IMG/VR virus record: IMGVR_UViG_3300046694_000296
Span: 1 to 64,000 of that record
Strand: one strand, 5' to 3'
Length of the DNA stretch: 64,000 nucleotides
The translations under genes were made by a program, and so were the position numbers. Positions 31,569-60,370 of this stretch are shown here, piece by piece. A model generated the notes under the pieces. It had not been told where the DNA came from. It made no database searches and saw nothing but the letters and a program-made list of their open reading frames with translations. The stretch's first letter is position 1. The number at the start of each line of letters is the position of its first letter.

Positions 31569-32045
31569 ATGCCAGGTTGTCAGATTCGCCGCAGGTTTTC
31601 GCACCACAAGCTCGGCACGAAGGCTTATCAGGTATGGGAAGTCCAGCACAACAACGCCGTGGTCGTGGTCTTCCAATACGGCTCTTTCACGATGGGTCGC
31701 GACGCGGTGACGATGGGCGGCACGATCGACGTGAACGAAGCGATGCACCCGATGAACGCCGACATGTTCGCGACGAAGAAGGTCACCGAGAAGAAGCGGC
31801 GCGGCTATGAGGAGTGGGTCGTCGAGACGTGCCCGTGCAGCGGCTACAACGACTTCCGCGAGATCCTCCAGACGGCATTCGGCAGCGGAAAGGCCAGCAC
31901 GATCGTCGCGAAACTGGATCAGTTCAACCTCGCTGTCGGGTCCAACCCCGCGCCAACGGTCGATCCCGAAAATGATGACAAGGGCAAAGCGAAAGCGCCC
32001 GCAATCGAAATCGAACAATCCTCGCCCGAATGGGGCAGCTGGTAG
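31569..32045 (+). CDS. WGR-like domain protein with C-terminal SPEWGSW
   Basis: 'KAYQVW....VVVFQYG....A..F..KKVTEKKRRGY' resembles WGR-domain pattern. Confidence 0.55.
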   Translation: MPGCQIRRRFSHHKLGTKAYQVWEVQHNNAVVVVFQYGSFTMGRDAVTMGGTIDVNEAMHPMNADMFATKKVTEKKRRGYEEWVVETCPCSGYNDFREILQTAFGSGKASTIVAKLDQFNLAVGSNPAPTVDPENDDKGKAKAPAIEIEQSSPEWGSW

Positions 32046-32056
32046 GAGAGAGAGTG

Positions 32057-32734
32057 ATGACCACCGAAACCGCCGTCGAAGCAAAACCGATTCTGCCGCC
32101 GTCCGTGTCTGCGGACGCGAAGCGCAACGCCTTCTACACGAAGTGCCCGGAGCAGCAATCGACCAAGCCCTACGCGATGTGCCAATACATCGCGGCCAAT
32201 CAGGGCGACGACTCGATCAAGACGCTCTACGGCGATTGTCTGAGCGCGATTCACCGCGGCCGCTGCGTCGCGGTCGGTATGCGCGAGGAAGAGGAGCTCA
32301 AGGGCCAGGCAATTTACTTCGTCGAGCGCGTCAAAGGCGAGGCGCTGGTCGCCGCGCAGACGACGTGGGCCGCAAGCGCGCCGAAGCGCGGGTATCAGCG
32401 CAACAAGTATTCAGAGGGCGCGAGCTTGCAGCCCGCGCCGCGCGTCGCTATCCCGCGCCCGAGCACGCCTGCGCCCGCACCGAAGAAACCCGCGTTCGAG
32501 TTCGACGGCAACATCTACGCCGCCGCGCTAAACGCCGCAGTGAAGAAGGAGCGCAACGCAACTAACGATCAGGCTACGCCTGCAAAGGTGACGCCCGCCG
32601 CTGCCGCGCCGGTCGCACCGACCCCGGCTCCCCAGCCGGAAGCCGCACCCGCACCCATCAACATGACCAGGCGCGCGGGCGAGTCGCCTCTCGAAATGGC
32701 TCGCCGCCTTCGCGCACAACAAGGGAGTAAGTAA
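32057..32734 (+). CDS. Hypothetical protein (4-Cys N-domain, Pro/Ala linker)
   Basis: GGAG RBS; four Cys in N-domain; terminal 'GESPLEMARR'. Confidence 0.7.
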   Translation: MTTETAVEAKPILPPSVSADAKRNAFYTKCPEQQSTKPYAMCQYIAANQGDDSIKTLYGDCLSAIHRGRCVAVGMREEEELKGQAIYFVERVKGEALVAAQTTWAASAPKRGYQRNKYSEGASLQPAPRVAIPRPSTPAPAPKKPAFEFDGNIYAAALNAAVKKERNATNDQATPAKVTPAAAAPVAPTPAPQPEAAPAPINMTRRAGESPLEMARRLRAQQGSK

Positions 32735-32737
32735 CAC

Positions 32738-34168
32738 ATGACTTCGATGACATCCTGCCAGGCATTCAAGGCGATCGAGAAAATCGCCGCGACGTCCCGC
32801 AAGAAAGACAAGGAGGCGATGGTCAAGCAGTTCCTCGCCTTCGACACGTTCAAGCGCGCGATCATCGCCGCGCTCGACCCGCTCGTGACCTACGGCATGC
32901 AGCAGGTGCCGGATCGCATCGACGGCGCAGCACCGGGCGCCAACACGTTCGAGAACGCGCCGATCTGGGAGACGCTCGACAAGCTGGCAAAGCGCACGCT
33001 CACCGGCAACGAAGCGCGCGACGAGGTGCAGCGCCTGATGACCTTCCTCACGCCCGAGTCGGCCGAGCTCTTCAAGCGCATCATCCGCAAGGACTTGCGT
33101 GCGGGCTTTTCCGAATCGACCGTCAATAAGGCATGGAAGGGCCTCATCCGCGAGTTCCCCTACATGCGCTGCGCGCTGCTCAAGGATGCGAAGCTCGACA
33201 CCTGGACGTGGGCCGAGGGCGTCATCTCGCAGGAGAAGGCCGACGGCATGTTCATGAATATCGACCACGAGGAGGGCGGTGTGGTCCGCATGACTAGCCG
33301 GCAGGGCACGCCATTCGATGTCGATGCGTTCGGCGAGTTTGCGGATCGCGTGCGTGCGCTGCTCACGCCGGGCACGCAGACGCATGGCGAGATGGTCGTG
33401 TTCGTCAATGGCAAGCTCGCTGCGCGTGAAATCGGCAACGGCATTCTGAACCGCGTAGCCGCGGGCGGCGCGTTCGGCCCGGACGAATCCCCGCTGTTCT
33501 ACGCATGGGATCAAATCCCGCTGGCTGCGGTCGCGCCGAAGGGCAAATACGAAGTCGGTTATCGCGATCGGCTGGTCGCGATGGCGGCGGGCCTGAAGAA
33601 AGGTGTGCCCACGCTCCAGCTCGGTCAGGCGATGATGATTCAGGTGATCCCGACGAAGCTGGTCAAATCGCTGGAAGAGGCGATGGTTCACTACCGCGAG
33701 CTGCTGGCGAAGGGCAAGGAAGGCACCATCATCAAGAACGGGGCCGCGATCTGGCGCGACGGCACGAGCAAGGAGCAGATCAAGCTCAAGCTCGAAGTGG
33801 ACGTCGATCTGGTCATCACGGGCATCGCACCGGGACGCGTGGGGACGAAAAACGAAGGCCGCGCCGGCGCGTTCAACTGCTCGAGCTCGGACGGCCAGCT
33901 GCGCGTCGATGTGACGGTCAAGAACGAGGATCTCCGGACCGCGGTTGACGCGAACGGCGATGACTTCATCGGTCGCATCATCGCAGTGCGGGCGAACGCG
34001 GTGATGAAGCCGAGCGAGAGCAGCGAGTTTCATTCGCTCTTCCTGCCGCGCATGGTCGAGGCGAGCTACCGGACGGACAAGAGCGAAGCCGACAGCCTCG
34101 AGTCGATCCTCGCACAGTTCGACGCCGCGGTCGGCGCGTCGCCGGCGAAGGTTGCGGAGGCCGCCTGA
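32738..34168 (+). CDS. ATP-dependent DNA ligase
   Basis: Motif I EKADG, 'HGEM', 'FYAWD', 'EGTIIK', 'KLK', 'LFLPR'. Confidence 0.93.
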   Translation: MTSMTSCQAFKAIEKIAATSRKKDKEAMVKQFLAFDTFKRAIIAALDPLVTYGMQQVPDRIDGAAPGANTFENAPIWETLDKLAKRTLTGNEARDEVQRLMTFLTPESAELFKRIIRKDLRAGFSESTVNKAWKGLIREFPYMRCALLKDAKLDTWTWAEGVISQEKADGMFMNIDHEEGGVVRMTSRQGTPFDVDAFGEFADRVRALLTPGTQTHGEMVVFVNGKLAAREIGNGILNRVAAGGAFGPDESPLFYAWDQIPLAAVAPKGKYEVGYRDRLVAMAAGLKKGVPTLQLGQAMMIQVIPTKLVKSLEEAMVHYRELLAKGKEGTIIKNGAAIWRDGTSKEQIKLKLEVDVDLVITGIAPGRVGTKNEGRAGAFNCSSSDGQLRVDVTVKNEDLRTAVDANGDDFIGRIIAVRANAVMKPSESSEFHSLFLPRMVEASYRTDKSEADSLESILAQFDAAVGASPAKVAEAA

Positions 34169-34169
34169 G

Positions 34170-34385
34170 ATGGAACAGCTGACTCTCCCTGCGATCCTCG
34201 CAGCGTCGCCGGCGCCCTGGACCTCGCAGGTGAACTTCGACGGCATCGGCGGCTGCCGCATGATTGATGCGAAGGGTGCCGAAGTGCCGCTGCTGTCTAT
34301 AATCGCGTTCGCGGGCATTCTCACCGCGACCATCGCCATGCAGAAGGCTTCACAACAGCCCGCGCAGGCACAACAGCCCGCATAA
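34170..34385 (+). CDS. Small hypothetical protein
   Basis: GGAGG RBS; follows ligase. Confidence 0.55.
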   Translation: MEQLTLPAILAASPAPWTSQVNFDGIGGCRMIDAKGAEVPLLSIIAFAGILTATIAMQKASQQPAQAQQPA

Positions 34386-34404
34386 CACAGCGCGTTGCAC
34401 CACA

Positions 34405-34431
34405 GAAAGCCCGGCCAAGAGCCGGGCTTTC
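34405..34431 (+). terminator. Hairpin terminator (possibly bidirectional)
   Basis: GAAAGCCCGGC-CAAGA-GCCGGGCTTTC. Confidence 0.65.
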
Positions 34432-34490
34432 GCCGTTGCGGAACGTCGAAGCGGGGCCGTATCATGTGCGCAATTCAGGAGAAAGGGCAC

Positions 34491-34889
34491 ATGACCTACA
34501 AGACCTTCACGCTCGGCGACCTACGCACGCTGCTCGCGCCGCTACCGACCACCCGCAAGCAAGCAGTTCTCTACACGCTCGACACGCGCGGCACGCTCGA
34601 CTACACGACCGTCCTCGGCTGGAAGGAGGCGCTGCGCACGCCCGCGAGCGAGTTCGCGAAGGACATCATTCGCGCACAGCCGCGCCACCTGCGCCTGGAC
34701 TACGTGTTCTGGGAGTATCACGAGACGGGCCAGGCCGCGCCGCTTTTCGGGCTCGAGGATAGCCTGCGGGAAGTGACGATGGGACGGAGCTTTGGCGAGC
34801 TGCAGGAGCTCTACGACCGAATGATCTGGATCGACAGCAGGGTGGAAGCGGAGCACTTCGTGCACACGCTGCTCAAGGAGCTGAATTAG
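34491..34889 (+). CDS. Hypothetical phage protein
   Basis: Purine-rich RBS; coherent codon usage. Confidence 0.6.
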   Translation: MTYKTFTLGDLRTLLAPLPTTRKQAVLYTLDTRGTLDYTTVLGWKEALRTPASEFAKDIIRAQPRHLRLDYVFWEYHETGQAAPLFGLEDSLREVTMGRSFGELQELYDRMIWIDSRVEAEHFVHTLLKELN

Positions 34890-35158
34890 AGATTGCGCCG
34901 GCGTGCGTGCAGGACGTTCAAGATGTCGATCCGCTTTAGCATGATGCGGTAGACGACGATGTAGTTCGGCAGAACGACCATCTCTCGCGTGTTCGGCCTG
35001 CGGCCCTCGCGATAGACATAGGGGTGATCGGGAAGTGTGGCGGCCGCAGCAAGGATCGTCTCTTGCACGAAATCTGCGGCGTCGATGCTGTCTTTGCTTA
35101 TGTGTTCGTGGATTTCGTCGAGTCGGCGTTCAGCACGCGGGGTCCAGTTAACCACCAC
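34886..35158 (-). CDS. RelE/ParE-family toxin
   Basis: 'WTPRAERRLDEI..I...A.......L...P..YREGR..TRE.V...NYIVVYR....I.ILNVLHARR'; GTG start overlapping the antitoxin end. Confidence 0.88.
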   Translation of the reverse strand: MVVNWTPRAERRLDEIHEHISKDSIDAADFVQETILAAAATLPDHPYVYREGRRPNTREMVVLPNYIVVYRIMLKRIDILNVLHARRRNL

Positions 35159-35345
35159 GCGCTTTTCTCCGCTCTGCGGCACGCGCGCGCAGGTTCGCGA
35201 CAACCTGATCGTGCGGGATCAACTCGCCGCGATCAGCTTCAGCCAGGCCCGCTTCGACCTCTTCACGGAACCACTTGTCGTAGGCTTCAGCCTCTTCCTT
35301 CGTGTCATGCCCGCTGACGGCGGGTTCGGTCCAGATATTTCCCAT
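35148..35345 (-). CDS. Cognate antitoxin
   Basis: 'AYDKWFREEVEAGLAEAD.G.LIPHDQV' antitoxin motif, upstream of and overlapping the toxin. Confidence 0.85.
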   Translation of the reverse strand: MGNIWTEPAVSGHDTKEEAEAYDKWFREEVEAGLAEADRGELIPHDQVVANLRARAAERRKARGG

Positions 35346-35566
35346 GAGTCACCTCATTCAGATGCCTTCATGATAGCGCGTGCAGCTTGGCACGTCACCG
35401 CGTCGTCTGCGGCGTGAACCCCTACCTGGTCGTGTTTGTTGATCATCGTTCTTCCTATGTCGTATTGATCAGGAGAAACGTGCTCGCGCTTGACGAAGCC
35501 ACGATAGAATAAAGCGCACCCACCGTCGCGGCCACGTGAGCCGTATGTTCAGCAAAGGCAGATGAC

Positions 35567-36115
35567 ATGAGCGTTGAGGAAGCAAAAAAGAGAGCGCTGG
35601 CAATCGTTCGGGAAAAGGGGCTGGACGTCGCCCTGATAACCGCGTTCCTTGAGACGCGGCATTACGCATCGTGGAGCAAACGGGACGATTTCGCCAAATA
35701 CAATATTGGCCTGTCGAACATATCTGGCGGACCGATGCCCGTGACGGTCGGATTCGCGAGCGGGAACGGCAACTCTGTGACAGCACAGCTGGACGGCATC
35801 GTGTTCACGCTGCGGGGCGTGTGGTATCTGCCTATGTCGTTTGATAGCAGTATCGCGACCGACATCTATGAAGGCGTCGAACTGTTGCTCGGTAACGATG
35901 TCGTGCTTGCTGGGGTGTATCAGGCGCGTGACCACGACGCGTGCATCCCGGCTCAATTTTCGCTGGTCAGCGTTGAGGGTTACCACTCAAGTCCGACGGC
36001 GGAACAGCTGCTCACGAAAATTTCAGATTTGATCAAGGCACACAAAGCGAAGCAAGCGGCCGAGCGCCAGGCCGCGGAAACGGAAAAGTATCGTGGCAAG
36101 TTCTCCTTTGACTAG
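35567..36115 (+). CDS. Accessory hypothetical protein
   Basis: 182-aa ORF with lower GC; no recognised motif. Confidence 0.6.
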   Translation: MSVEEAKKRALAIVREKGLDVALITAFLETRHYASWSKRDDFAKYNIGLSNISGGPMPVTVGFASGNGNSVTAQLDGIVFTLRGVWYLPMSFDSSIATDIYEGVELLLGNDVVLAGVYQARDHDACIPAQFSLVSVEGYHSSPTAEQLLTKISDLIKAHKAKQAAERQAAETEKYRGKFSFD

Positions 36116-36154
36116 GAGTTCCTCTGCGGTTTTCTTTTCACGCCTGCACAGGCT

Positions 36155-36182
36155 AGTTGACATAATACAAATTATCACCGTT
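36155..36182 (-). other. dif-like XerC/XerD recombination site
   Basis: Minus strand AACGGTGATAA-TTTGTA-TTATGTCAACT: 11-6-11 layout, ATAA/TTAT inner dyad, XerD arm 9/11 to TTATGTTAAAT. Confidence 0.75.
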
Positions 36183-36241
36183 TTGGGGCCAGATCATTTT
36201 TTGTCGTCCATGAGCTGGACAAGGCCGGGGAAGCATTAGCG

Positions 36242-36904: not shown

Positions 36905-36951
36905 GATGTTTGCCCCTGCTAACTGGCATTGCCTGTCGGCAAAAAAAGACT

Positions 36952-37248: not shown

Positions 37249-37250
37249 AA

Positions 37251-37670: not shown

Positions 37671-37679
37671 GGTAACAAC

Positions 37680-41577: not shown

Positions 41578-41650
41578 GCGCCAAGACGCGACCGTTAGAC
41601 TTTTGTCTATCGAATTAAAACCGTTGTTTTTTCTCAATAGGGGAATGACC

Positions 41651-43954
41651 ATGCAGGTGAACAATCGTGTCCTCGTGATGCGCGAGGCGATCACCAAAAT
41701 TGTGCCGATGTTAACTCAACGCTCAGTGCGCGTGACGCAGCAAGGCACGCAAGCATTCGTTGAATACCACGGGACCACGCTGGAGGTGAAGCGCGTCAAC
41801 CTGCCGTATATCCCCGAAGACGCCAGCGACCAACTGCTCGACGCGACGCAGGGCTTCCTCGATCACGAGGTCGGCCACGTCCTGTTCACCGAGCAGCGCT
41901 TTGTGAAAAAGGCCGCGAAGCTCAAGGTCCACTCGCTGCACAACATGGTCGAGGACACGTTCGTCGAGCGGAAGATGGGCGAGAAGTTTCCGGGCTGCGG
42001 CTCGAACCTGACGCGCATGCACGGGTTCTTCCTCACCGAATACATCGACACTCAGCTCGCCGAAAAGCCCGAGCACTCAGCCGCAATCCTGATGGTGGTT
42101 GCGATTCGTGCATGGGCGGGCCAGCCCGCCTTCGTCGACTACATGAAAGACAAGTGGGAGTTGATGAAGGACGTCGTTGACCGTCTCGGTGCCGACTTCC
42201 CGAAGATGGTCCGGGGCGTAGACAGCACCGAGCAGGCGCTCAAGGTCGCGATCGAAGCGAAGAAGCGCCTCGAACCGAAACCGCAGCCGACGCCGCCCGC
42301 GCCGCCGATGACCCCGCCGCCGGCACCGCCCGAGCCGCCGAAGTCGAGCACGCCGCCCGAAGAGCCGCAAGAACCGCAGCAGGGCGGCCAGGGTGACGGC
42401 GAGCCCGACGAGGAAAACGAGAACGACGAGCCGCAGCAGCCCAACGACATGCCGAACTTGGGCGAGCCGGAACCCGAGCAGAGCGCGCCGAGCACCCCGC
42501 AGCCGGAAGGTGACGACGAGGACGACGAACCGAAGGGTGAGGAAGAACAGGAGCCCAACGGTGAGGAGGTTCAGGAGCCGGAACCCGAGCCGACGCCCGA
42601 AGCGGGTGACGAGGAAGACGAGCCCGCACCTGCGCCGAGCAACGAAGCGGGCGATGAGTCCGACGAGGGCGAAGGTGACGACAGCGACGACGAGGATGAA
42701 AACTCGAGCGGTGGCATGTCGGGCGAGGAAGGGGAGAACGACAGCGACGCCGAAGACGAAGGTGCACCGAGCGGCGCGGGTGACGGTCTGCCCGGCGGTG
42801 AGCAGTCTGAGGACAGCGCCGAGAGTGACTCGGGCGACGCAGGTGGTGAGGACGAGAACGGGGCCGGTCAGCAGGACGCGGGCGACCAGCACGGTCACGG
42901 CACGCCGGAAGCAGGGGAGGGCGATCCGACCGGTGGGCGCGATCCGAACGACGATCGCGACTTCATGAAGGAGCTCGAGGACGCTGATATCAAGGAGTTC
43001 GACGAGGCTGCGGCCGAAGCGCTCTCGAAGCAAGCCGTCGAAGCGACCAAGGGCGCGGATTACACCGTGTTCACCCGCGATGAGGACGTGATCGGCGTGC
43101 TCGAAGTGCCGGAGGAGTTCGGGCAAGAGACGGTCACGCACATGCAATCGAAGGTGGACCACATGATCGGCCCGCTCCAGAAAGACCTGCAGCGCGCCAT
43201 TGCTGCCCGCTCGCAAGCAATCTGGACAGGTGGGCACCGGCGCGGCCAGCTGCACGGTGCCTCGCTTGCCCGCGTGCTGACCGGCCGCGAAGACGTGTTC
43301 CGCCAGAAGCAGGTGTCGCGCACGAAAGACGTCGCCGTGTCGCTGCTCGTCGATGGCTCGGGCTCGATGTGGCAGCACGGCAAGATCAAGGTGGCCTCAT
43401 ACGCCGCGTATGCGCTCTCGGCCGTGCTCGACAACATCGGCATCACCAACGAGGTGCTCGCCTTCAGCACGAACGAGTTCAGCTACGGCACGCTCAAAGC
43501 GATGAGCGAGGAGGCCAGCCAGCACCGCCTGCGTTACTCGCGGGGCGCCGCACTTGAGATCCGCATCCTCAAGTCGTTTGCTGAGCGCATGACGCCGATC
43601 GTGCGCCGTCGCTTCGCGCTGCTCTCGCAGGGTGATGCAATGATGCAAGAGAACGTCGATGGCGAGAGCGTGCAAATCGCGAACCACCGTCTCCAGCAGC
43701 AGCGCGCGACGCGCAAGGTGATGATGGTGCTCTCGGACGGGATGCCTGCGGTCAACGGGCACCGTGCCCCGATCCTCGCGAAGCACCTCAAAGAGGTCGT
43801 CAAGCAGATCGAGAAGCGCGGCACCGACGTCGTAGCGCTCGGCATTCTCGACCCGTCGGTTAAACAGTTCTACGACCGCGCGCTCGTCCTGAATTCGGTC
43901 GAGGAGCTGCCGTCGCTGGTCATGAAGGAACTTCACCGCCTCCTGGTGCAGTAA
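41651..43954 (+). CDS. CobT-like vWA protein with N-terminal HExxH domain and acidic linker
   Basis: HEVGH at 41864-41878 plus 'NMVED'; about 250-aa Pro/Asp/Glu linker; MIDAS DGSGS and 'VLSDG'. Confidence 0.85.
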   Translation: MQVNNRVLVMREAITKIVPMLTQRSVRVTQQGTQAFVEYHGTTLEVKRVNLPYIPEDASDQLLDATQGFLDHEVGHVLFTEQRFVKKAAKLKVHSLHNMVEDTFVERKMGEKFPGCGSNLTRMHGFFLTEYIDTQLAEKPEHSAAILMVVAIRAWAGQPAFVDYMKDKWELMKDVVDRLGADFPKMVRGVDSTEQALKVAIEAKKRLEPKPQPTPPAPPMTPPPAPPEPPKSSTPPEEPQEPQQGGQGDGEPDEENENDEPQQPNDMPNLGEPEPEQSAPSTPQPEGDDEDDEPKGEEEQEPNGEEVQEPEPEPTPEAGDEEDEPAPAPSNEAGDESDEGEGDDSDDEDENSSGGMSGEEGENDSDAEDEGAPSGAGDGLPGGEQSEDSAESDSGDAGGEDENGAGQQDAGDQHGHGTPEAGEGDPTGGRDPNDDRDFMKELEDADIKEFDEAAAEALSKQAVEATKGADYTVFTRDEDVIGVLEVPEEFGQETVTHMQSKVDHMIGPLQKDLQRAIAARSQAIWTGGHRRGQLHGASLARVLTGREDVFRQKQVSRTKDVAVSLLVDGSGSMWQHGKIKVASYAAYALSAVLDNIGITNEVLAFSTNEFSYGTLKAMSEEASQHRLRYSRGAALEIRILKSFAERMTPIVRRRFALLSQGDAMMQENVDGESVQIANHRLQQQRATRKVMMVLSDGMPAVNGHRAPILAKHLKEVVKQIEKRGTDVVALGILDPSVKQFYDRALVLNSVEELPSLVMKELHRLLVQ

Positions 43955-44089
43955 ATCTTCCCGCAGGTGAATCACTTTGCCTGCATAGGATAGTAAGTGG
44001 TGACTTGACGTAGCCAAGAGTAACCACTTACTATTTCACCTGTAGCGAATCACAACCAATTTTAATTTTTCTCTGCATCGGAGGATTCA

Positions 44090-45301
44090 ATGAGCGATAC
44101 CGGCGACAAGATCTCTTGCCAGGAGTGCGGCGCGCTGACCCACGCGATCCAGTTGCACCTGCCGGAAGCCCACCCGGGCATGACCCTCGCCGACTACCAG
44201 GCGAAGTTTCCCGAAGCACCTGTGCTGTCCGAGCGCGCGAAAGCCGAGCTCGAGCGCCAGCGTGTCGCAAAGGCCGCTGCAGCGCCCGCAGTCACCGCCT
44301 CGATGGCCGGTAGCGCGCTGCCCGCTAACGTGGTCGCGCTGAACCCCGACGGCAAGACGACCGCCGCGATGCACGAGATCTTCGGCTTGGTCGATGGTCA
44401 TGGGAAACCTGTCGCAGCTGCCTTGAGCTCGCGCAAGGAACCCGTGCCGGTCACGATCTTCGCCTCCCCGCGCGACGCCGACATGGTGCCCGAGATCGAC
44501 GCAGGCTTCATTTTCGACATCGAAAACCTGAAGAATGCGCTGATGGCGATCGAGCTCCGCAAGAACCTCTACGTGTGGGGTCACGCCGGCACCGGTAAGA
44601 CGACGCTGATCGAACAGGTCGCGGCGCGCACCGGGCGTCCGGTCATTCGGGTGCAGCACTCGATCGGCACTGAAGAGTCGCACGTCCTCGGTCAGTGGGT
44701 GGTGCGTGGCGGGCAGACCGAGTTCCAGCCGGGCTTGCTCCCGCTCGCGATGCGCAACGGGTGGACCTACCTCGCGGACGAATACGACTTCGGTAACCCC
44801 GCGGTCCTCGCGGTCTACCAGCCGATTCTCGAACCGGGCAAGAGCCTGGTCATCAAGGATGCGCCCGACGAATGGCGCGTCGTGAAGCCGCACGAGAACT
44901 TCCGCTTCGTCGCAACGGGCAACACCAACGGTTCCGGTGACGACACGGGCCTCTATCAGGGCACGCAGATTCAGAACGCCGCGAACTACGACCGTTTCGG
45001 GATGGTCCTCGAAGCCGCCTACATGAAGCCGGAGCTCGAGTCGGCGATTCTCGTGCAGCGCTGCCGGATTCAGAAGAAGAACGCCGACTCGCTGGTCGAT
45101 TTCGCAAACCGCGTGCGCGAAGCCTACAAGAACAAGGAGATCGGCAGCACGATCTCCCCGCGATGCCTGATCGACGCGGCCGACATCGGTCTGCGACGCG
45201 CGAACTGGCGCGCGGGCGTGACGCTCTCCTTCATCAACAAACTCTCTGCGGTAGACCGCGCTGTCGTCGACGGCGTTGCATCGCGCATCTTCGACAAGTA
45301 A
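44090..45301 (+). CDS. CobS/MoxR-like AAA+ ATPase with N-terminal C2H2-like zinc finger
   Basis: CQEC..H...H; GHAGTGKT; 'ADEYD'; 'FRFVATGNT.G', 'DRF'. Confidence 0.9.
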   Translation: MSDTGDKISCQECGALTHAIQLHLPEAHPGMTLADYQAKFPEAPVLSERAKAELERQRVAKAAAAPAVTASMAGSALPANVVALNPDGKTTAAMHEIFGLVDGHGKPVAAALSSRKEPVPVTIFASPRDADMVPEIDAGFIFDIENLKNALMAIELRKNLYVWGHAGTGKTTLIEQVAARTGRPVIRVQHSIGTEESHVLGQWVVRGGQTEFQPGLLPLAMRNGWTYLADEYDFGNPAVLAVYQPILEPGKSLVIKDAPDEWRVVKPHENFRFVATGNTNGSGDDTGLYQGTQIQNAANYDRFGMVLEAAYMKPELESAILVQRCRIQKKNADSLVDFANRVREAYKNKEIGSTISPRCLIDAADIGLRRANWRAGVTLSFINKLSAVDRAVVDGVASRIFDK

Positions 45302-46609: not shown

Positions 46610-49600
46610 TTGAATATCAAGCATCTGCTTTCCGCGAGGTCGGACTTCTCGCTCGGGGAGTCCACGCTGCAGGTCGGCACCCTGATCGAAACCGCGAAGG
46701 CACAGGGTTACGAGACGGTTGCGCTGGTGGACAACATGTCCATCTCCAACATGGTCGCGTTCACGGACAAGGCGAAGAAAGCGGGGATCAAGCCGATCGT
46801 GGGCTGCACGATCCGCATGGTCGACGATCCGACCTACCGCAAGCCGCCGAAGGCGTCGGGCGAGGTCGAGCGTCCGAACCCGCTCGTCATGCTCAAGGTC
46901 TACGCGAAGACCGACGCGGGCCTGCGCAGCCTCATGAAGCTGCTCTCCAAGGGCAACAGCCCGGAATACTTCTACTATCACTCGCGGGTGGGCCTCGAGG
47001 ACGTGCTGCAGCTGGAAGAGTGCGCGGTCGCGACCGGTGACTTCTACGGCCTGTTCCATCACAAGCGGTGGGAGGAGATCGCGTATCGCCTGAGCGAGAA
47101 GTTCGGCCGCGACTTCTGTGTGGAGTTCGTGCCCGGCGCGACGCCGCTGCACAAGACGCTCAACAAGCTCGCGCTCACCTGCCTCGACCGCTTCACCGCG
47201 ACGCCGATCGGCACCTGGCCCGCGCTCTATGCGACCGACGATCAGGCCGACAGCCTCGACGTGCTGCGCGCGATTCTCGGCAACAACAAGATGACCGACC
47301 GGTGGCTGAACAAGCCCTACCTGCGGAACTTCTCGGTGCGCGCGCCGGGCGATCTGGTGAAGGCGCTCGTCGCCGAAGGCTTGCCCGCGAAAGAGATCAT
47401 CAAAGGCAACCAGGCGCTTGTCGATTCGTGCACGTTCGAATTCAAGAAGCTCGACCCGTGCCTGCCGAAGATGGCAGAGGACGAGTTCAAAGCGCTCTGC
47501 GCCGAAGTCGCGAAGGGCTGGGCGCAACGCTTTGCGGCGCCCGTGCTCGGGCACAAGCCGGAACCCGAAGAGCTGCCGCAATACAAAGCGCGGCTCGCCT
47601 ACGAGCTCGACGTGCTCCGCAAAATGGGCTTCTCGGGCTACTTCCTGCTCGTGCAGCACATCGTCCAGTGGAGCAAGCAAAACGGAATTTTGGTCGGTCC
47701 CGGCCGCGGGAGCGTTGGCGGTTCCCTCGTCGCTTACCTGATGGGAATCACGGACGTCGATCCGATCCGCTTCAATCTGCTGTTCGAGCGCTTCATCAAT
47801 CCGGAGCGTCTCGACTTGCCCGACGCCGACCTCGACTTCATGTCCAAGCGCCGGCACGAGGTGATCGATTACATCGCCACTCACTTCGGGCGCGAGAACG
47901 TCGCGGGCGTGTCCAACTACAACACGATGGGCGCCGCGGGCGTGATGCGCGATACGTCGCGTGTCCACGAACTCAACCCGTTCGACTATGCCTGCTCGAA
48001 GCAGATGGAAAAGCAGCACGGGGTGTCGCTCTCGCTGGAGGAGTCGGCCGCGATCGTGCCAGAGATCGACAAGTTCAAGGGCAGCTTCCCGGACATTTGG
48101 AAGCACATGGTGAACCTCGAAGGTGCCGCGCGCGGTCTTGGGCAGCATGCAGCGGGCGTCATCGTCGCGGGCGAGCCGATCGTCAACCGCGCCGTGGTCG
48201 AAACCCGCACGGGCGGGCCGGTCTGCAATTGGGACAAGCGAACGGTCGAGGACTTCGGGCTCATCAAGATGGACATTTTGGGCTTGACTAACCTCGACGT
48301 GATGAAGCTCGCCGCCGACTACATCAAGGAGCGGCACGGCAAGACGATCGACTTCCTGCGGCTGCCGCTCGACGACAAGAAGGTGCTGGAAGCATTCGGG
48401 CGGGGCGACACCACGGGCGTGTTCCAGTTCGAGTCGCCCGGCATGCGCCGGCTCTTGCGTGAGATGGCGCTATCGGGCGCGGTGACGTTCGACGATCTGG
48501 TGGCGGTGGTCGCGCTGTATCGCCCGGGTCCGCTCGACGCGGGTCTGTGCGACGACTACGTGGCGATCAAGCAGGGTTCCAAGCAGCCGTATTACGAGCA
48601 CCCGAACATGGCCCCTGCGCTCAAGGACACCTACGGGGTGATCGTGTATCAGGAGCAGGTGATGCAGATCGCGCGTGACCTGGCGGGCTTCTCGATGGCG
48701 GGCGCCGACCATCTGCGTAAAGCGATGGGTAAGAAGGACAAGGAGAAGATGGCCGAAATGCGCGACAAGTGGGTGGCCGGTTGCGTGTCGCACTCGGGCA
48801 TGACCGAAGGCTCGGCCAATGCGCTCTTCGACAAGATCGAAGTGTTCGCCGGATACGCCTTCAACAAATCGCACTCAGTGGAGTATGCGGTCATCAGCTG
48901 GTGGACGATGTGGCTGAAGGTCAACTACCCGGCCGAATACTTTGCGGCCTCGCTCACTGAGATCGACAAAGAAGAGAAGCGCGAGCCGCTCGTGCAGGAT
49001 GCGCGGCGCATGAGCATGCAGGTGTTGCCGCCCGATATAAACCGGTCAAGCGCCCGGGTAGAGATCGTGGGCGAGGATAAGCTCTACGCCCCGTTCCAGG
49101 CGCTCAAGGGTTTATCCGAGAAGGCGGCAGGCTACATCGTAGACGCACGCATAAAGTGGGGCAAGCCGTTCGCGAACCGCACCGACTTCGACGCCGCAAT
49201 GAAGGCGGCAGGCTACACCGGCCGGCACATCAACCAGGCGGTCAAGGACAAACTCGTGCTGATCGGTGCCTTCGCCGAGTGCGAGGGCGACAAGGTGCCC
49301 GCCATGCACCCCGATCGGCTGAAAAACCGCATCGAGCTACTGCCAGGTTTCACGGTCGATACTGTGAAAGCTGACCGAACGCTTAACGCTGAGCACCTCG
49401 CCTTGCTGCAATTGGTGCGCATCGGTGAGGAGACGCGCTCGTGCGAGAAGTGCTCGCTCAAGGGCGGCTGTCACCCGATGCCGCGCATCGGGAAGACGCC
49501 GAAGTTCATGGTCGTGTCCGACAACCCGAACTGGCAGGAGGAAAAGGCAGGGAAGCTCCTCGAAGGCGATAACGCGAAGCTCGTCATCAACGCGTTGAAG

Positions 49601-49954
49601 GAAGCGGGGCTCTCGGCACAGGACGGGTATTTCACGACGCTCGTGAAGTCCGGCAAGCCGAAGGATCAGAAGACGCTCACGAACGAACAGATCAACGGTT
49701 GCTCCGAATACCTCAAGCGCGAGCTGGAGATTCTCAAGCCGCCGGTGGTCGTGACACTCGGGAGCAACGCGGCGCGCTTCTTTGCGCCGGGCGTGAAGGG
49801 CGGCTCGATGGAGCTCGCGGGCAAGGTCATCTTCGACCCGAAGCTCGACGCCTCGATTGTTTTTGGCATCAACCCGGGGCAGATTTTCCATGACCCGGGC
49901 AAGTATTCCGTTTTGCAAACCGTGGCCGCGAAGGTGGCCGACCTTATCACCTGA
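46610..49954 (+). CDS. dnaE: DNA polymerase III alpha subunit with C-terminal UDG-like domain
   Basis: 'GPGRGSVGGSLVAY', 'FERFINPER..LPDADLDF', 'HAAG', 'KMDILGL', 'GYAFNKSH'; last ~175 aa resemble family-4 UDG. Confidence 0.95.
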   Translation: MNIKHLLSARSDFSLGESTLQVGTLIETAKAQGYETVALVDNMSISNMVAFTDKAKKAGIKPIVGCTIRMVDDPTYRKPPKASGEVERPNPLVMLKVYAKTDAGLRSLMKLLSKGNSPEYFYYHSRVGLEDVLQLEECAVATGDFYGLFHHKRWEEIAYRLSEKFGRDFCVEFVPGATPLHKTLNKLALTCLDRFTATPIGTWPALYATDDQADSLDVLRAILGNNKMTDRWLNKPYLRNFSVRAPGDLVKALVAEGLPAKEIIKGNQALVDSCTFEFKKLDPCLPKMAEDEFKALCAEVAKGWAQRFAAPVLGHKPEPEELPQYKARLAYELDVLRKMGFSGYFLLVQHIVQWSKQNGILVGPGRGSVGGSLVAYLMGITDVDPIRFNLLFERFINPERLDLPDADLDFMSKRRHEVIDYIATHFGRENVAGVSNYNTMGAAGVMRDTSRVHELNPFDYACSKQMEKQHGVSLSLEESAAIVPEIDKFKGSFPDIWKHMVNLEGAARGLGQHAAGVIVAGEPIVNRAVVETRTGGPVCNWDKRTVEDFGLIKMDILGLTNLDVMKLAADYIKERHGKTIDFLRLPLDDKKVLEAFGRGDTTGVFQFESPGMRRLLREMALSGAVTFDDLVAVVALYRPGPLDAGLCDDYVAIKQGSKQPYYEHPNMAPALKDTYGVIVYQEQVMQIARDLAGFSMAGADHLRKAMGKKDKEKMAEMRDKWVAGCVSHSGMTEGSANALFDKIEVFAGYAFNKSHSVEYAVISWWTMWLKVNYPAEYFAASLTEIDKEEKREPLVQDARRMSMQVLPPDINRSSARVEIVGEDKLYAPFQALKGLSEKAAGYIVDARIKWGKPFANRTDFDAAMKAAGYTGRHINQAVKDKLVLIGAFAECEGDKVPAMHPDRLKNRIELLPGFTVDTVKADRTLNAEHLALLQLVRIGEETRSCEKCSLKGGCHPMPRIGKTPKFMVVSDNPNWQEEKAGKLLEGDNAKLVINALKEAGLSAQDGYFTTLVKSGKPKDQKTLTNEQINGCSEYLKRELEILKPPVVVTLGSNAARFFAPGVKGGSMELAGKVIFDPKLDASIVFGINPGQIFHDPGKYSVLQTVAAKVADLIT

Positions 49955-52833: not shown

Positions 52834-52845
52834 AGGACAAAGAAC

Positions 52846-55252: not shown

Positions 55253-55308
55253 GTAAGCCGTTACGTGTTTGCTACAATCGGTCATTCTGAAATGAGGGAA
55301 CCAACACG

Positions 55309-55716: not shown

Positions 55717-55788
55717 GCAACGGGTTACTATACTGTCACCTGTAGCGCACAAGTTTCTCACCTTTCAACCACTCAGGAGTCACACCGC

Positions 55789-56337: not shown

Positions 56338-56355
56338 CGCATCACCAGCAGTAGA

Positions 56356-56378
56356 AACAGGGGCCGAGTGCCCCTGTT
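56356..56378 (+). terminator. Hairpin/terminator
   Basis: AACAGGGGC-CGAGT-GCCCCTGTT. Confidence 0.5.
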
Positions 56379-56435
56379 CAGCTTCCAGAACTTCGTCATG
56401 AAAATGACGCAATCGAATTCAGAACGAGGGAAACC

Positions 56436-57500
56436 ATGCAGCCATACGGGGTGCTTTCCGATTCACATTGTCACGACTGGTCCGCATTCGCGACCGAAAA
56501 CGACGACCTGATTAATACGCGGCTCGCAGTCATCCTCGACGAGATCGAGCGGTGCGCGGCCGAAGTGCACAAGGTGGGCGGGGATACCGTCTACCACGCG
56601 GGCGACCTGTTCCACGTTCGCGGGCGCATCGCGCCGAGCGTGCTGAACCCGACGCGGGATCGCTTCGAACACATCTACCGGACCTACGGCGTGAAGTTCC
56701 GCCTGCTCCCGGGCAATCACGACCTGGAACACAAGCACAGCAATCGCGTGGGCAACGCCATCGAGGCGATGCGCAGCCAGTGGGTCGAGGTCGGCCACGA
56801 CACGCAGGTGTTCGCCGAGCACAACGTCCTGATGGTCCCGTGGGTCGAGGGTGTCGCGGATCTGAAGAAGCGCCTCGAGTTGGAGCGCGACAACCTGCTC
56901 ACGCAGGGCGAAGACCCGGCCAACTACAACCTCATCATCCATGCGCCGATCGACGGCGTGATCGAGGGCTTGCCCGACCACGGCCTCACCGGCGAGTGGC
57001 TCGCAGCGCTCGGCTTCAAGCGGGTGTTCAGCGGCCACTATCACAACCACAAGGAGATCGCGCCCGGCAAGGTGTGGTCGGTGGGTGCCACGACGCACCA
57101 GACATGGGGTGATACCGGCAGCAAAGCGGGCTTCCTGATCGTTTCGACCGAGGACGTGAAGTGGCACTGCTCGCGCGCGCCGCACTTCGTGGACATCGAA
57201 GCGGGCATGGACCCGAGCGAAGTCGCGCTGCGCTGCGACGGCAACTACATTCGCGTCAAGGTCAGCAACGCGAAGCCTTCCGAGGTCAGCGCGATCCGCG
57301 ATGGTCTGATGAAACACGGCGCGCTCGGCGTGAACGTGAACGTGGTGAAGGTGCCGACGACGGGCCGCGCATCGACGAGCACAGTGAAAGCGGGCGCATC
57401 GGTCGAGGTGCAGGTGACGGATTACATCAAAGCGGCGGGCTTCGAGCACGCCGATCTGGTCGCGCAGGGCGCGATCAGTGTTCTCGCGGAGGCAGTGTAA
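56436..57500 (+). CDS. SbcD/Mre11-like nuclease (gp47-like)
   Basis: SDSH, GDLFH, GNHD, GHYH metallophosphoesterase motifs. Confidence 0.92.
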   Translation: MQPYGVLSDSHCHDWSAFATENDDLINTRLAVILDEIERCAAEVHKVGGDTVYHAGDLFHVRGRIAPSVLNPTRDRFEHIYRTYGVKFRLLPGNHDLEHKHSNRVGNAIEAMRSQWVEVGHDTQVFAEHNVLMVPWVEGVADLKKRLELERDNLLTQGEDPANYNLIIHAPIDGVIEGLPDHGLTGEWLAALGFKRVFSGHYHNHKEIAPGKVWSVGATTHQTWGDTGSKAGFLIVSTEDVKWHCSRAPHFVDIEAGMDPSEVALRCDGNYIRVKVSNAKPSEVSAIRDGLMKHGALGVNVNVVKVPTTGRASTSTVKAGASVEVQVTDYIKAAGFEHADLVAQGAISVLAEAV

Positions 57501-59462
57501 ATGGAAATTCTCAAACTTCGGGCAGTCAACTTCCTGACGCTCGGCGACTCGGGCGACCTGTTGCTCAAGGACCGCGGGCTCGTCCTCATTCAGGGCGTGA
57601 ACAAGGACGACACATCAACCGAATCGAACGGTGCGGGCAAGAGCTCCATCGCCGACGCACTGTGCTGGGCGCTCTTTGGCGCGACCGCGCGCGAAGAGTC
57701 CGGTGATTCGGTCATCAATGAGAAGGCGAAGAAGGGCACCTACGTGTCCGTCGTCGTGCAGGACGGCGAGACGATCTACGACATTCGTCGCCACCGCAAG
57801 GACAAGCAGTTCAAGAACGCGACCACAATCACGCGCTGGAACCCGGCCGTCGAGTATCAGAACGGCGCGCAGGGCGAGCGCATCGAGAAGGGCACCGAGA
57901 AAGAGATCCAGCTCCAGATCAACGAGATCGTCGGCTGCAACTACGACGTGTTCAAGTCGGCGATCTACGCGGGCCAGGAGGACATGCCCGACCTGCCGAA
58001 AATGACCGACAAGCCGCTCAAGATGCTGATCGAGAAGGCGTCGGGCATCGAGCGGCTCGAATCGGCCTACAACATCGCGAACCGCAAGCACGACGAGGCG
58101 AAGGCGGCGGTCGAGTCGGTCAACACGAAGATGGGGCTCTTGGAGAACCAGATCGTCAACTGGAAGGTGTCGGTTGCGCAGCTGGAGACGCAGCACGCAC
58201 AGTTCGAGGCCGCGCGCCCGAGCGTGCAACAGCAGTTCCTCGACCAGGCTGCGGCTGCCGCCGATGCGCTCAAGAAGAACTTCGCCGCCTATCAGGGACT
58301 CAACGAGGCCGCAGCAGCGAAGGAACGCGACGAGTTGCAAGCGATCCTCGCAGATCACCGCAAGTTCACCGACCAGCGCGACCAGCTGCTCAAGGCAGAG
58401 CATGCGGCGTCGCGTGCGTATCACGCCCGGAAGGGCGACTTCGAGCGCGCCCGCGCGCAAGTGTTGGCAGCGGTCGAAGCGGTGAAGAACGCGCCGGCTG
58501 CGATGGAAAAGCCCTGCACCGAGTGCGGCAAGCCCCACACCGCCGAAGAGAAGGACGAGTTCGTCGCGCACCAGACCAAGCGCGCGAAGGAGCTGAGTGT
58601 CACCGCCGGTCAGATCCAGACCGAGGTGACGGAGCTGCAGAACGTCGCGGCCGCCGCCGGGAAAGAGCTCGAAGAGTTTACGGCGACGATCCCTGACGTG
58701 TCGGCGACCAGCACCCGGCTCGCGCAGGTGCAGCAGACACTCACCGCGTGCCAGCAGTTGAAGAACGTGATCCAGCGTCAGAAGGCCGACCACGATCGTC
58801 TGAAGGAAGAAGGGCAGAAGGCGCTCGTCGCGGTCAACCCGCACCAGTCGGCGATCGACATGGGCCGGGAGAACGTCGGCAAATGCGAGCAGGCGATCGA
58901 CAAGCTGAAAGCCGACGCGGCCGAGCGCATCAAGGCGGCCGAGGTTGCCGCGAGCGTCGCGAAGGTGTTCAGCCCCGGTGGCGTGCGCGCGCAGATTCTT
59001 GATACGGTGACGCCGTTCCTGAACGACCGCACGAGCGACTACCTCTCCGCGCTCTCGGACGGGAACATCAGCGCCGTCTGGTCGACGCTCACGACGACCA
59101 CGAAGGGCGAGCTCCGCGAGAAGTTCAACATTGAAGTCGAGAACGCCACGGGCGCAAAGTCGTTCGGTGGTCTGTCGGGCGGGGAAAAGCGCAAGGTGCG
59201 GCTCGCGACGATGCTCGCGCTGCAAGACTTGGTTGCCTCGCGCGCGACGAAGCCGCTCTCCCTCTGGGTGGGCGACGAGATCGACGATGCGCTGGACGCA
59301 GCGGGCCTCGAGCGCCTCATGACCGTGCTGGAGCAGAAGGCGCGCGAGAAGGGCACCGTGCTCATCATCAGCCACGAGTCGCTGTCCGATTGGTGTGACC
59401 AAATCGCCACCGTCACGAAGGAGGGCGGGCAATCGACGGTCAGCGGGGCGCTGTCGGCATGA
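57501..59462 (+). CDS. SbcC/Rad50-like ATPase (gp46-like)
   Basis: NGAGKSS, CTEC zinc hook in coiled coil, LSGGE, 'DEIDDALD', 'IISH'. Confidence 0.93.
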   Translation: MEILKLRAVNFLTLGDSGDLLLKDRGLVLIQGVNKDDTSTESNGAGKSSIADALCWALFGATAREESGDSVINEKAKKGTYVSVVVQDGETIYDIRRHRKDKQFKNATTITRWNPAVEYQNGAQGERIEKGTEKEIQLQINEIVGCNYDVFKSAIYAGQEDMPDLPKMTDKPLKMLIEKASGIERLESAYNIANRKHDEAKAAVESVNTKMGLLENQIVNWKVSVAQLETQHAQFEAARPSVQQQFLDQAAAAADALKKNFAAYQGLNEAAAAKERDELQAILADHRKFTDQRDQLLKAEHAASRAYHARKGDFERARAQVLAAVEAVKNAPAAMEKPCTECGKPHTAEEKDEFVAHQTKRAKELSVTAGQIQTEVTELQNVAAAAGKELEEFTATIPDVSATSTRLAQVQQTLTACQQLKNVIQRQKADHDRLKEEGQKALVAVNPHQSAIDMGRENVGKCEQAIDKLKADAAERIKAAEVAASVAKVFSPGGVRAQILDTVTPFLNDRTSDYLSALSDGNISAVWSTLTTTTKGELREKFNIEVENATGAKSFGGLSGGEKRKVRLATMLALQDLVASRATKPLSLWVGDEIDDALDAAGLERLMTVLEQKAREKGTVLIISHESLSDWCDQIATVTKEGGQSTVSGALSA

Positions 59463-60370
59463 ACGCAAAGATCGCGGCGGGTCTGAAAGCCCGCCAGTTC
59501 AGCAACCGCGACGAGCTCATCTGGACCCCGCCCTCGAAGCCGCAGACCGTGGAGGAGTTCCAGAAGGAGTATATGACCGTGATCTCCACCCCGCGGCAGT
59601 TGGGCAAGAGCCACTTCGACGAGGAGTTCAAGAAGTTCGCCGTCGAGCAGATTGAGAAAGCGACGAGCAAGGCGCTCACGGGCGCGACGCTCACCGCGAG
59701 CACGATCACTGTGCCTCCGGTCACGCTCACCGCGGAGGAGCTCAAGAAGCAGTATGAAGAGTTGCGCAAGCTCGCGATGTCCGGATCGCCGGCACCGTGG
59801 GCGCCACCGCCCGCAACCGGCGGCGGGCTGCTTCGCCAGCCGACCGTGTTGGGCGCCGCGCCCGCACCGAAGAAGCCGGGCGTGCTCGACAGCCTTGTTA
59901 CGAGCGCCACCGAGTTCACACGATTTCAGGAGAAAAACCAGATGACAGATGCAGAGAAGGAAGCGGCGAAAGCAGTCGCCGCAGCGATCAACGGGCTGCT
60001 CACGCCGTCGGGTGCGGGTCCGTTCAAGCTCACCGGCCCGGCGCAATTGACGATCAAGACGCGGCAGGGCCAATACAAGAAGAAGGCGTTCATGGGCGAT
60101 GAGGAGATACGCCTCACGACGAGCTATGCAGGCTCGCGCGACGGCGTGATCTGCGTGTTCAAAAACACCGTGCCCGTCGAATACGCCGCGATCGAGATTC
60201 CGCTGATGGAAGCGCGCGAGCTTCTGTCGGGCTTTTCGAAATACGTCGATTCGCTCAACATTGCGGACATGGACAACATCGTCGCGGGCATCGAGCAGAA
60301 CATCGCGCAGGCGGTCGCCGTCGAGCGCGAAGAGGCAATGGCTGTATCCCCCGAGTTTGGTAGCTGGTAA
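59459..60370 (+). CDS. Hypothetical protein with C-terminal SPEFGSW
   Basis: ATGA overlap; possible internal restart at Met 59942 after AGGAG. Confidence 0.65.
   Translation: MNAKIAAGLKARQFSNRDELIWTPPSKPQTVEEFQKEYMTVISTPRQLGKSHFDEEFKKFAVEQIEKATSKALTGATLTASTITVPPVTLTAEELKKQYEELRKLAMSGSPAPWAPPPATGGGLLRQPTVLGAAPAPKKPGVLDSLVTSATEFTRFQEKNQMTDAEKEAAKAVAAAINGLLTPSGAGPFKLTGPAQLTIKTRQGQYKKKAFMGDEEIRLTTSYAGSRDGVICVFKNTVPVEYAAIEIPLMEARELLSGFSKYVDSLNIADMDNIVAGIEQNIAQAVAVEREEAMAVSPEFGSW

Follow-up and report, generated by a model that had tools for sequence, protein, structure and literature searches.

A shared C-terminal peptide on unrelated proteins of an SSU5-like phage and its relatives, a possible docking tag

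Genes and features of the locus

The window analysed here is a stretch of 64,000 nucleotides, positions 1 to 64,000 of the IMG/VR virus record IMGVR_UViG_3300046694_000296, which derives from a phage of the SSU5-like family (about 100-120 kb). Two of its proteins, designated here families A and B, end in nearly the same short peptide. The features relevant to this observation are the following:

31569-32045 (+), family A, 158 aa: predicted WGR-like domain (residues 1-124), flexible linker (125-151) and tail SPEWGSW-COOH
32022-32042 (+), tail codons of family A (S P E W G S W), followed by a TAG stop at 32043-32045
32057-32734 (+), conserved small protein with four Cys (phrog_4558)
32738-34168 (+), ATP-dependent DNA ligase (PF01068 and PF04675)
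41603-43954 (+), CobT-like protein: N-domain with an HExxH motif, acidic Pro-rich linker and vWA domain with an intact MIDAS
44090-45301 (+), CobS-like MoxR AAA+ ATPase (PF07728 AAA_5 and PF08406 CbbQ_C), partner of the CobT-like protein
59459-60370 (+), family B, 303 aa: variable or disordered N-terminal part (residues 1-159), conserved domain (160-296) and tail SPEFGSW-COOH
60347-60367 (+), tail codons of family B (S P E F G S W), followed by a TAA stop at 60368-60370

The original prediction that two otherwise dissimilar proteins of this phage share a C-terminal tag was confirmed, and the phenomenon proved larger than reported. The family A protein ends in EQSSPEWGSW and the family B protein in AMAVSPEFGSW, with the codons as originally given, while BLASTP found no similarity between the two proteins apart from the tail itself (residues 141-158 against 283-303, E 0.013). 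In addition, three further unrelated ORFs of the same phage, which lie outside the window and had been missed, were found to carry such a tail, namely (in contig coordinates) 75190-75681 (DLAGSW), 75675-75929 (SPMAGSW) and 94495-95055 on the minus strand (ERWGGW).

In the AF2 model of the family A protein, residues 1-124 have a pLDDT of about 95, whereas residues 125-158 have a pLDDT of 62-74 and no secondary structure. A Pfam search returned no hit at E <= 0.01, although some homologues are named WGR-domain proteins by JGI. The best Foldseek matches in the PDB were the WGR domains of PARP2/1/3 (probability 0.97, E 0.01); over these and 2ra8 the probability was 0.96-0.98, but E was only 0.01-0.1 and TM 0.40-0.46. 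In the ESM Atlas, clusters carrying PF05406 (WGR) were matched at a feature score of 0.91 and TM 0.62. The small protein phrog_4558 always follows the tail protein and precedes the ligase, and the same cassette occurs in distant relatives. Its true start is the ATG at 32057, after the RBS GAGAGAG, and not 32030, as start and RBS are conserved in six genomes.

The start of the family B gene overlaps the stop of the SbcC-like gene (ATGA). In the AF2 model, residues 160-296 have a pLDDT of 80-89, while the 291-300 block averages 52 and residues 300-303 fall below 50. No fold match was found in the PDB. Syntenic tail-bearing proteins are SSU5_076 (PTWATW) of Salmonella phage SSU5 and gp091 (DFGGWA) of Pseudomonas phage nickie.

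Conservation and enrichment of the tail

The tail residues are among the few invariant columns in homologues down to 35-39% identity. In family B, P298, E299, F300, S302 and W303 are invariant in an alignment of 11 sequences, while in family A P153, W155 and W158 are invariant in 17 sequences, and sixteen homologues keep the tail. Of the 150 best representatives of the WGR family (clusters at 50% identity), 145 end in [WFY][GA]x[WFY], including hits whose profile match stops before the tail. Furthermore, orthologues use different synonymous codons for the same tail (in family B CCC/CCG/CCT, GAG/GAA, TTT/TTC and AGC/AGT), which supports the proposal that selection acts on the protein and not on the DNA.

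Enrichment against background had been proposed beforehand as a test of the motif, and it was found to exceed chance. In each related genome the pattern [WFLMIVY][GAS][STGA]W closes 3 ORFs, where 0.03-0.06 are expected from its internal frequency. With a broader pattern, nickie has 11 such ORFs (Poisson P 1e-12), BUCTxx99 13 (2e-14) and RHEph10 5 (1e-4). The motif is enriched only at the C-terminus, with zero or one residue after it, whereas internal copies occur at background frequency.

The consensus derived from 44 tails is P-[E/D]-x-[Y/F/W]-G-x-[W/F]-COOH, and the motif runs through the clade with a dialect that is uniform across the tagged proteins of each lineage. It is WG[ST]W in the group of the present phage, WATW in Salmonella phage SSU5, YGxW in Stenotrophomonas phage BUCTxx99 (13 ORFs, two of them BRCT domains) and in JGB6, FGGW[A/S] in nickie (11 ORFs) and FGRF in Rhizobium phage RHEph10. 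However, one relative (G017) keeps the whole replication core, including CobT/CobS, but has no canonical tails.

The tail thus behaves as a short linear motif as regards sequence: it has four to seven conserved positions, sits at the extreme end of a flexible segment, recurs on unrelated proteins (five per genome, which share the tail and nothing else) and is conserved in their orthologues while the flanks diverge. No description of it was found in the literature searched.

Candidate readers of the motif

The original interpretation, namely a docking motif or degron for a common partner, possibly the vWA/AAA+ machine of the window, was only partly supported. Protein-level selection, the character of a short linear motif and the absence of a description in the literature searched all held, and a common reader is the natural inference. 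On the other hand, nothing ties the tag to the vWA/AAA+ pair, a proposal that is neither supported nor refuted.

According to that proposal, the tail would be the client tag, or degron, of the CobT/CobS-like MoxR-vWA motor at 41603-45301, the MIDAS and/or the HExxH N-domain gripping the acidic, carboxy-terminal tail and the AAA+ ring remodelling the tagged protein or feeding it to proteolysis. The CobT-like protein matches PF11775 at 2.7e-32, and its residues 402-780 align to the solved CobT 9uka at E 4e-20. In 10 sequences the MIDAS residues D584, S586, S588 and D712, as well as E89 of the HExxH motif, are invariant, and H88 and H92 are nearly so. In the real cobaltochelatase the client CobN is held between the M48C-like CobT N-domain and the vWA, with its last two helices next to the MIDAS (preprint 10.64898/2026.07.21.739949). 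Enterobacterial hosts of SSU5-like elements are not known to possess CobN, and the phage motor there would have to act on other clients. The pair is present in every tail-bearing relative examined and in 15 of 15 complete relatives, but this co-occurrence is uninformative, since about 25 other core genes show the same pattern. In addition, the unrelated CobT-bearing phages ICP2 and CRP-810 have no such tails, and G017, as already mentioned, has the motor without canonical tails. The conserved tail positions are the two aromatic residues and the glycine, while the acidic position, on which the idea of MIDAS binding rested, is only a preference. The single complex prediction gave no answer and does not count either way. 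We regard this reading as unlikely, although it is not excluded.

A second possibility is that the tail docks the phage proteins onto a conserved host hub, such as the beta sliding clamp, SSB or RNA polymerase, by mimicking a host motif or creating a new one. No recognisable phage clamp gene was found next to the DnaE-type polymerase, so that host replication factors are probably used, and hub-and-tail logic is typical of host clamps and SSB (PMC11139829). However, the tail does not fit the clamp-binding consensus QL[SD]LF or QLxLxL, as it has no Gln, a different spacing of hydrophobic residues, and Trp and Gly where that motif has none. Moreover, host hubs are very conserved, yet phages of different proteobacteria use distinct dialects and nickie adds one residue after the Trp, while the core enzymes of the phage itself lack the tail. 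A host hub thus appears doubtful.

The tail might also be a degradation signal read by a host or phage protease, limiting the lifetime of early and middle proteins. Exposed C-terminal tags on flexible ends are how ssrA-type degrons work, many tagged proteins of BUCTxx99 and nickie are small proteins in early-looking gene arrays, and nickie encodes an HslV-family peptidase. However, the HslV homologue is absent from the present phage, and the tail does not resemble known C-terminal degrons of ClpX, ClpA or Lon: all 44 tails end in W or F, or in nickie in W/F plus A, S or G, and not in (L/A)AA-COOH or a related ClpX motif. The tagged proteins include likely stoichiometric partners of enzymes, one of them translationally coupled to SbcC, and those with WGR-like or BRCT domains or coupled to SbcC look more like recruited accessory modules than substrates for destruction. 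A choice between degron and docking site cannot be made firmly on present evidence, but we consider a degron improbable.

Targeting into the procapsid, so that the proteins are injected with the DNA, seems very unlikely. C-terminal cargo peptides exist for the HK97-fold shells of encapsulins, and some tagged proteins are predicted to bind DNA ends or breaks, which would suit co-injected DNA-protection factors. Nevertheless, the tagged genes lie in the replication/early region and not in the structural module, we found no virion proteomics data, and eleven to thirteen cargo proteins would be unusual for a siphovirus.

Equally remote is the possibility that there is no protein reader and that the two aromatic residues act directly, for example by stacking on DNA bases at nicks or ends, or by driving condensate formation or self-association. 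Aromatic C-terminal residues of T7 gp2.5 mimic bases in a DNA-binding cleft, and several tagged proteins have predicted DNA-break-binding domains. However, the acidic residues and proline just upstream argue against direct DNA binding, and the strict terminal position and genome-wide uniform dialects are hard to explain without a specific pocket.

A putative docking motif

With moderate confidence, we interpret the tail as a C-terminal short linear docking motif at the end of a flexible linker, carried by several unrelated accessory proteins. In this genome these are a protein resembling a WGR nick/break sensor next to primase and ligase, a protein translationally coupled to SbcC and three small proteins, while in relatives the carriers include BRCT-domain proteins (31 bits against a cut-off of 21.3). 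In this view, all copies would be read by one common partner with a pocket for two aromatic side chains three residues apart and for the chain end, most likely phage-encoded and part of the replication/repair apparatus, and the tag would tether exchangeable DNA-structure-sensing modules to it. The uniform dialects are what co-evolution with one reader predicts, and tagged proteins sit beside primase/ligase, SbcC and DnaQ.

Our analysis establishes the motif, its position, conservation, enrichment and lineage dialects, whereas protein binding, the existence of a single reader and its being phage-encoded are inferred. The leading candidates for this still unidentified reader are the ligase/Okazaki-maturation module, the DnaE polymerase and the CobT/CobS motor. 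The ligase is a candidate by Rosetta-stone reasoning only, since elsewhere WGR is fused to ATP-dependent ligases (PMC7470946). It should be considered, however, that none of the core enzymes (DnaE, ligase, FEN, SSB, RecA) carries the tail, unlike classical clamp systems, in which the polymerase does. Furthermore, many tagged proteins in relatives are small proteins of unknown function in arrays, which would also fit host-takeover proteins, a degron or virion targeting.

Comparison with known systems

In T7, the unrelated replication proteins gp2.5 and gp4 carry similar flexible, acidic C-terminal tails with an essential terminal Phe, both docking on the DNA polymerase. Here the core is aromatic-Gly-x-Trp/Phe with an upstream Pro-Glu instead of a poly-acidic run, five to thirteen proteins carry it instead of two, and the carriers are accessory proteins rather than the SSB and the helicase. 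In T4/RB69, the sliding clamp reads tails of gp43, gp33 and gp55, and, as with the PIP-box and beta-clamp motifs, one hub reads a short hydrophobic or aromatic motif, often C-terminal, on the flexible ends of many unrelated clients. In our case no phage clamp gene was recognised, the sequence does not fit any clamp consensus, and the polymerase, ligase and FEN lack the tail.

The bacterial SSB tip (DDDIPF-COOH) similarly combines an acidic stretch and a terminal aromatic residue with a free carboxylate on a disordered linker, and is read by a hydrophobic pocket with a basic rim. There, however, the hub carries the tail and the clients the pocket, whereas here many clients carry the tail, and the phage's own gp32-like SSB has a different acidic tail ending in Leu. 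MoxR AAA+/vWA motors (CobST-CobN, CbbQO-Rubisco, NorQD) grip a client through the vWA domain, but no MoxR-vWA system is known to read a shared C-terminal peptide on many clients, and there is no evidence that the present one does. Finally, WGR and BRCT domains are covalently fused to DNA ligases (as in LigA BRCT) or PARP in other organisms, whereas here they are predicted in stand-alone proteins that end in a common peptide, suggesting non-covalent attachment, though not necessarily to the ligase.

Biological significance

C-terminal docking tails organise the T7, T4 and bacterial replisomes. A new motif of this kind, conserved across a very large and poorly studied phage group, would point directly to the central hub of its DNA metabolism. 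IMG/VR alone holds 386 relatives of one core gene, and the group includes Salmonella SSU5 and related phage-plasmids of Klebsiella and Escherichia. The motif also offers a simple experimental handle, as a peptide of 10 residues suitable for pull-downs and as a regular expression that flags dozens of proteins of unknown function as members of one putative interaction network.

In addition, the finding bears on the unexplained CobS/CobT genes of phages. If the unlikely reading of a private recruitment code were true, the C-terminal P-E-x-Ar-G-x-W peptide would mark up to 13 unrelated accessory proteins per genome of SSU5-like phages and phage-plasmids as clients of the CobT/CobS-like machine, whose N-domain keeps an HExxH metallopeptidase motif, and this enigmatic 'cobalt chelatase' would gain a function as a tag-directed protein remodeller or protease. 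More generally, the shared tail suggests that WGR and BRCT modules, which are fused to ligases and PARP elsewhere, are attached non-covalently in these phages.

Identification of the tails

Two ORFs of the phage end in closely similar peptides, and their tail codons were confirmed to be those given in the original prediction. A BLASTP comparison of the two proteins aligned only the tails (E 0.013). The original observation that two dissimilar proteins share a C-terminal tail is therefore correct. However, the phenomenon is larger than had been described. The window is the first 64 kb of a 215,656-bp contig consisting of two related phage genomes of about 108 kb joined head to tail (copy A, 1-108902; copy B, 108903-215529), which are about 80% identical and collinear, with a 127-bp terminal overlap (bases 1-127 equal 215530-215656). 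Copy B is 94-99% identical (99% over most of its length) to an independent IMG/VR contig of 105,058 bp, so that the join is most likely a chimera of co-assembly. A regular-expression scan of the whole contig found the two ORFs and their orthologues in the second copy, while listing every ORF ending in W revealed three more unrelated families per genome. The five families (A-E), which share nothing but the tail, comprise the two ORFs of the window (A and B) and three ORFs given in contig coordinates (C, D and E):

31569-32045, plus strand, 158 aa, family A, ending ..SSPEWGSW
59459-60370, plus strand, 303 aa, family B, ending ..VSPEFGSW
75190-75681, 163 aa, ending ..DVADLAGSW
75675-75929, 84 aa, ending ..DSPMAGSW
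94495-95055, minus strand, 186 aa, ending ..TDERWGGW

In addition, two conserved small ORFs outside the window, at contig positions 82124-82411 and 83733-84059, end in Trp with other endings (..EQIEVCW and ..DLDQYDW, the latter ..DLPQYDW in relatives). These endings are kept in most of the IMG/VR relatives checked and may represent a second or degenerate tail class.

Conservation and enrichment

Family B has 10 homologues (35-87% identity), in which P298, E299, F300, S302 and W303 are invariant, while the N-terminal half is variable or absent. Family A has 16 homologues (39-99%), with P153, W155 and W158 invariant. Six further complete relatives from IMG/VR keep families B and E with their tails, all but the incomplete G006 keep A, and four keep C. 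A tblastn search of GenBank phages with either protein gave no hit.

Orthologues encode the same tail with different synonymous codons, which in family B are CCC/CCG/CCT, GAG/GAA, TTT/TTC and AGC/AGT, indicating that selection acts on the peptide. The possibility of a DNA or RNA element underlying the tail was rejected, since codons differ among families and orthologues. The pattern closes 3 ORFs per genome, where 0.03-0.06 are expected from its internal frequency, and internal copies are at background level and are not conserved.

Predicted nature of the tagged proteins

The model of family A shows a confident domain (residues 1-124, pLDDT about 95), followed by an unstructured linker and tail (pLDDT 62-74). 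Its best PDB structural matches are the WGR domains of PARP2, PARP1 and PARP3, with a probability of up to 0.97-0.98 but an E of only about 0.01. ESM Atlas places the protein in viral WGR clusters, while Pfam itself does not reach significance. A profile search of 1.84 billion cluster representatives returned 157 clusters, and 145 of the best 150 end in [WFY][GA]x[WFY], overwhelmingly WG[ST]W, including hits whose profile match ends before the tail. In distant members the gene order DnaB, primase, WGR-like tail protein, small protein and ATP-dependent ligase is kept. The small protein (phrog_4558; 32030-32734 as a mechanically called ORF) always sits between the tail protein and the ligase, and has four Cys and a low-complexity Ala/Pro tail. 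The mechanical start at 32030 overlaps the family A tail, while the conserved RBS GAGAGAG and the ATG at 32057 mark the real start.

Family B has a conserved domain at residues 160-296 (pLDDT 80-89) and a disordered tail, and its start codon overlaps the stop of the SbcC-like gene. Foldseek and VIA-align found no fold match for it. Pfam and PHROGs gave no annotation for families A-E or for the tail proteins of phages nickie and SSU5, and PDB sequence searches found nothing either. For family E, ESM Atlas gave only a weak helix-hairpin-helix-like lead (TM 0.41).

Distribution and lineage-specific forms of the motif

By DnaE and CobT similarity the phage belongs with Pseudomonas phage nickie, Stenotrophomonas phage BUCTxx99, Xanthomonas phage JGB6, Rhizobium phage RHEph10, and Salmonella phage SSU5 with its Klebsiella and Escherichia relatives. 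It shares about 40 syntenic core genes with nickie, about 30 of them in all three named relatives compared. Several relatives (G005, G006, G013, G017 and G019-G021, IMG/VR proviruses; P0024 and P0026) are classed as proviruses or are whole contigs of about 105-109 kb in Burkholderia or Paraburkholderia assemblies, and some carry integrases next to the ligase. As the group includes SSU5 and relatives that are phage-plasmids, this phage may be temperate or plasmid-like. A four-gene block next to the terminase (contig 99290-103144, outside the window) encodes two ParB_N-domain proteins, an ABC-type ATPase and a 411-aa protein. The ATPase is 57-70% identical across all lineages, as conserved as the terminase.

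The motif was found throughout the clade, each lineage having its own dialect. In nickie, 11 ORFs end in hydrophobic-G-x-[W/F] plus one A, S or G, among them the protein after SbcC (DFGGWA), the homologue of family C after DnaQ (DAGGWS) and the protein after primase. In BUCTxx99, 13 ORFs fit the pattern, most of them [E/N]xYGxW and most of them in a run of small consecutive genes. At 27312-30074 on the minus strand (locus L062, 7312-10074), nine consecutive small genes (64-138 aa) almost all end in YGxW. Two of them are BRCT domains, at 30.9 and 31.2 bits against a cut-off of 21.3, while the others may be diverged paralogues. JGB6 uses the same YGxW dialect. In RHEph10, five ORFs end in [F/Y]G[R/M]F, including the protein after primase. 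In SSU5, SSU5_042, between primase and ligase, ends TGWATW, SSU5_076, between the SbcC-like exonuclease and the RuvC-like gene, ends PTWATW, and a third ORF ends PAWDW. Two further IMG/VR relatives carry WG[STA]W and [WF]GSW tails.

Poisson probabilities for these counts are 1e-12 (nickie), 2e-14 (BUCTxx99) and 1e-4 (RHEph10). Forty-four tails give the consensus P(-7/-6), E/D(-6), N/E/D(-5), Y/F/W(-4), G(-3), x(-2), W/F(-1)-COOH.

Candidate readers of the tail

The original prediction regarded the tail as a docking motif or degron for a common partner, and proposed the vWA/AAA+ machine of the phage as its speculative reader. This interpretation is only partly supported, as a docking motif with a common partner remains our most likely reading, while nothing specific links that machine to the tag. 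The genes at 41603-45301 are a CobT-like protein (41603-43954) and a CobS-like MoxR AAA+ ATPase. The CobT-like protein has an N-domain with a conserved HExxH (E89 invariant, H88 and H92 nearly so) plus E117/D118/E122, an acidic Pro-rich linker of about 250 residues and a vWA domain with an intact MIDAS, and it may be an active metallopeptidase attached to a MoxR motor. Recent preprints show that real CobT has an M48C-peptidase-like N-domain and holds its client CobN between that domain and the vWA, with the last helices of CobN next to the MIDAS. The idea is therefore mechanistically reasonable. In addition, the enterobacterial hosts of SSU5-like elements are not known to possess CobN, so those phage motors would need other clients.

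However, the pair is simply a core gene, present in 15 of 15 complete relatives, and thus its presence gives no discrimination. Moreover, two unrelated CobT-bearing phages have no such tails. The IMG/VR relative G017 has no canonical tails but keeps the whole core, including the motor and a divergent ATP-dependent ligase, and so it points to no hub. A complex prediction using proteins of the window only, in which CobT 20-225, CobT 480-783 and ligase 1-465 were folded against the 24-residue tail of family A, scored 0.00 and gave no answer, which is no evidence either way. The ligase is an alternative candidate by Rosetta-stone logic only.

Two false leads were rejected. A conserved internal IGAFA in DnaE resembled the nickie dialect, but it aligns at the end of the Pfam helix-hairpin-helix match (803-894) in all lineages, and corresponds to the structural GAFD of bacterial DnaE rather than to a tail-like motif. 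This DnaE-type Pol III alpha (46610-49954) carries a C-terminal domain of the uracil-DNA-glycosylase superfamily (PF03167, residues 962-1071), where no OB-fold or tau-binding domain was detected, and the fusion region is covered by the DnaE matches in the named relatives (query coverage to residues 1102-1114). A NrdB tail mimicking the motif was also rejected, since NrdB ends ..GTLDWD and tblastn found no NrdB homologue in two tail-bearing lineages.

Comparison with known tails and proposed role

In logic the tag resembles the T7 gp2.5/gp4 tails, the T4 clamp-binding tails, PIP-box and beta-clamp motifs, and an inverted version of the SSB tip, while in sequence it fits none of them. No description of this tag was found in the literature searched for the motif strings, for phage tail motifs, for CobST in phages and for WGR in phages. 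The gp32-like SSB of the phage (50744-51826) has its own, different C-terminal tail (..DPELDALLAGL, with D354 and L357 invariant), following a long Ala/Pro-rich, low-complexity region that we take to be disordered. This would be a second tail code in the same replisome.

The fixed position at the chain end, the flexible approach, the two aromatic residues three positions apart with a glycine taken as obligatory, the recurrence on unrelated folds, and a dialect that is uniform within a genome but differs between lineages are together the signature of a short linear docking motif, most likely read by one pocket-bearing partner that co-evolves with it. While the tails, their conservation, enrichment and dialects were established from the sequences, binding to a protein and the existence of a single reader are inferred. 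The dialects argue for a phage-encoded reader rather than a highly conserved host hub, but this step is also inference. The identifiable carriers (WGR-like, BRCT) are DNA-break or nick-sensing and scaffolding modules that are fused to DNA ligases and PARP in other organisms, and they also lie beside primase/ligase, SbcCD and DnaQ. We therefore read the tag as a putative tether that would attach exchangeable accessory modules to a common component of the phage replication/repair apparatus.
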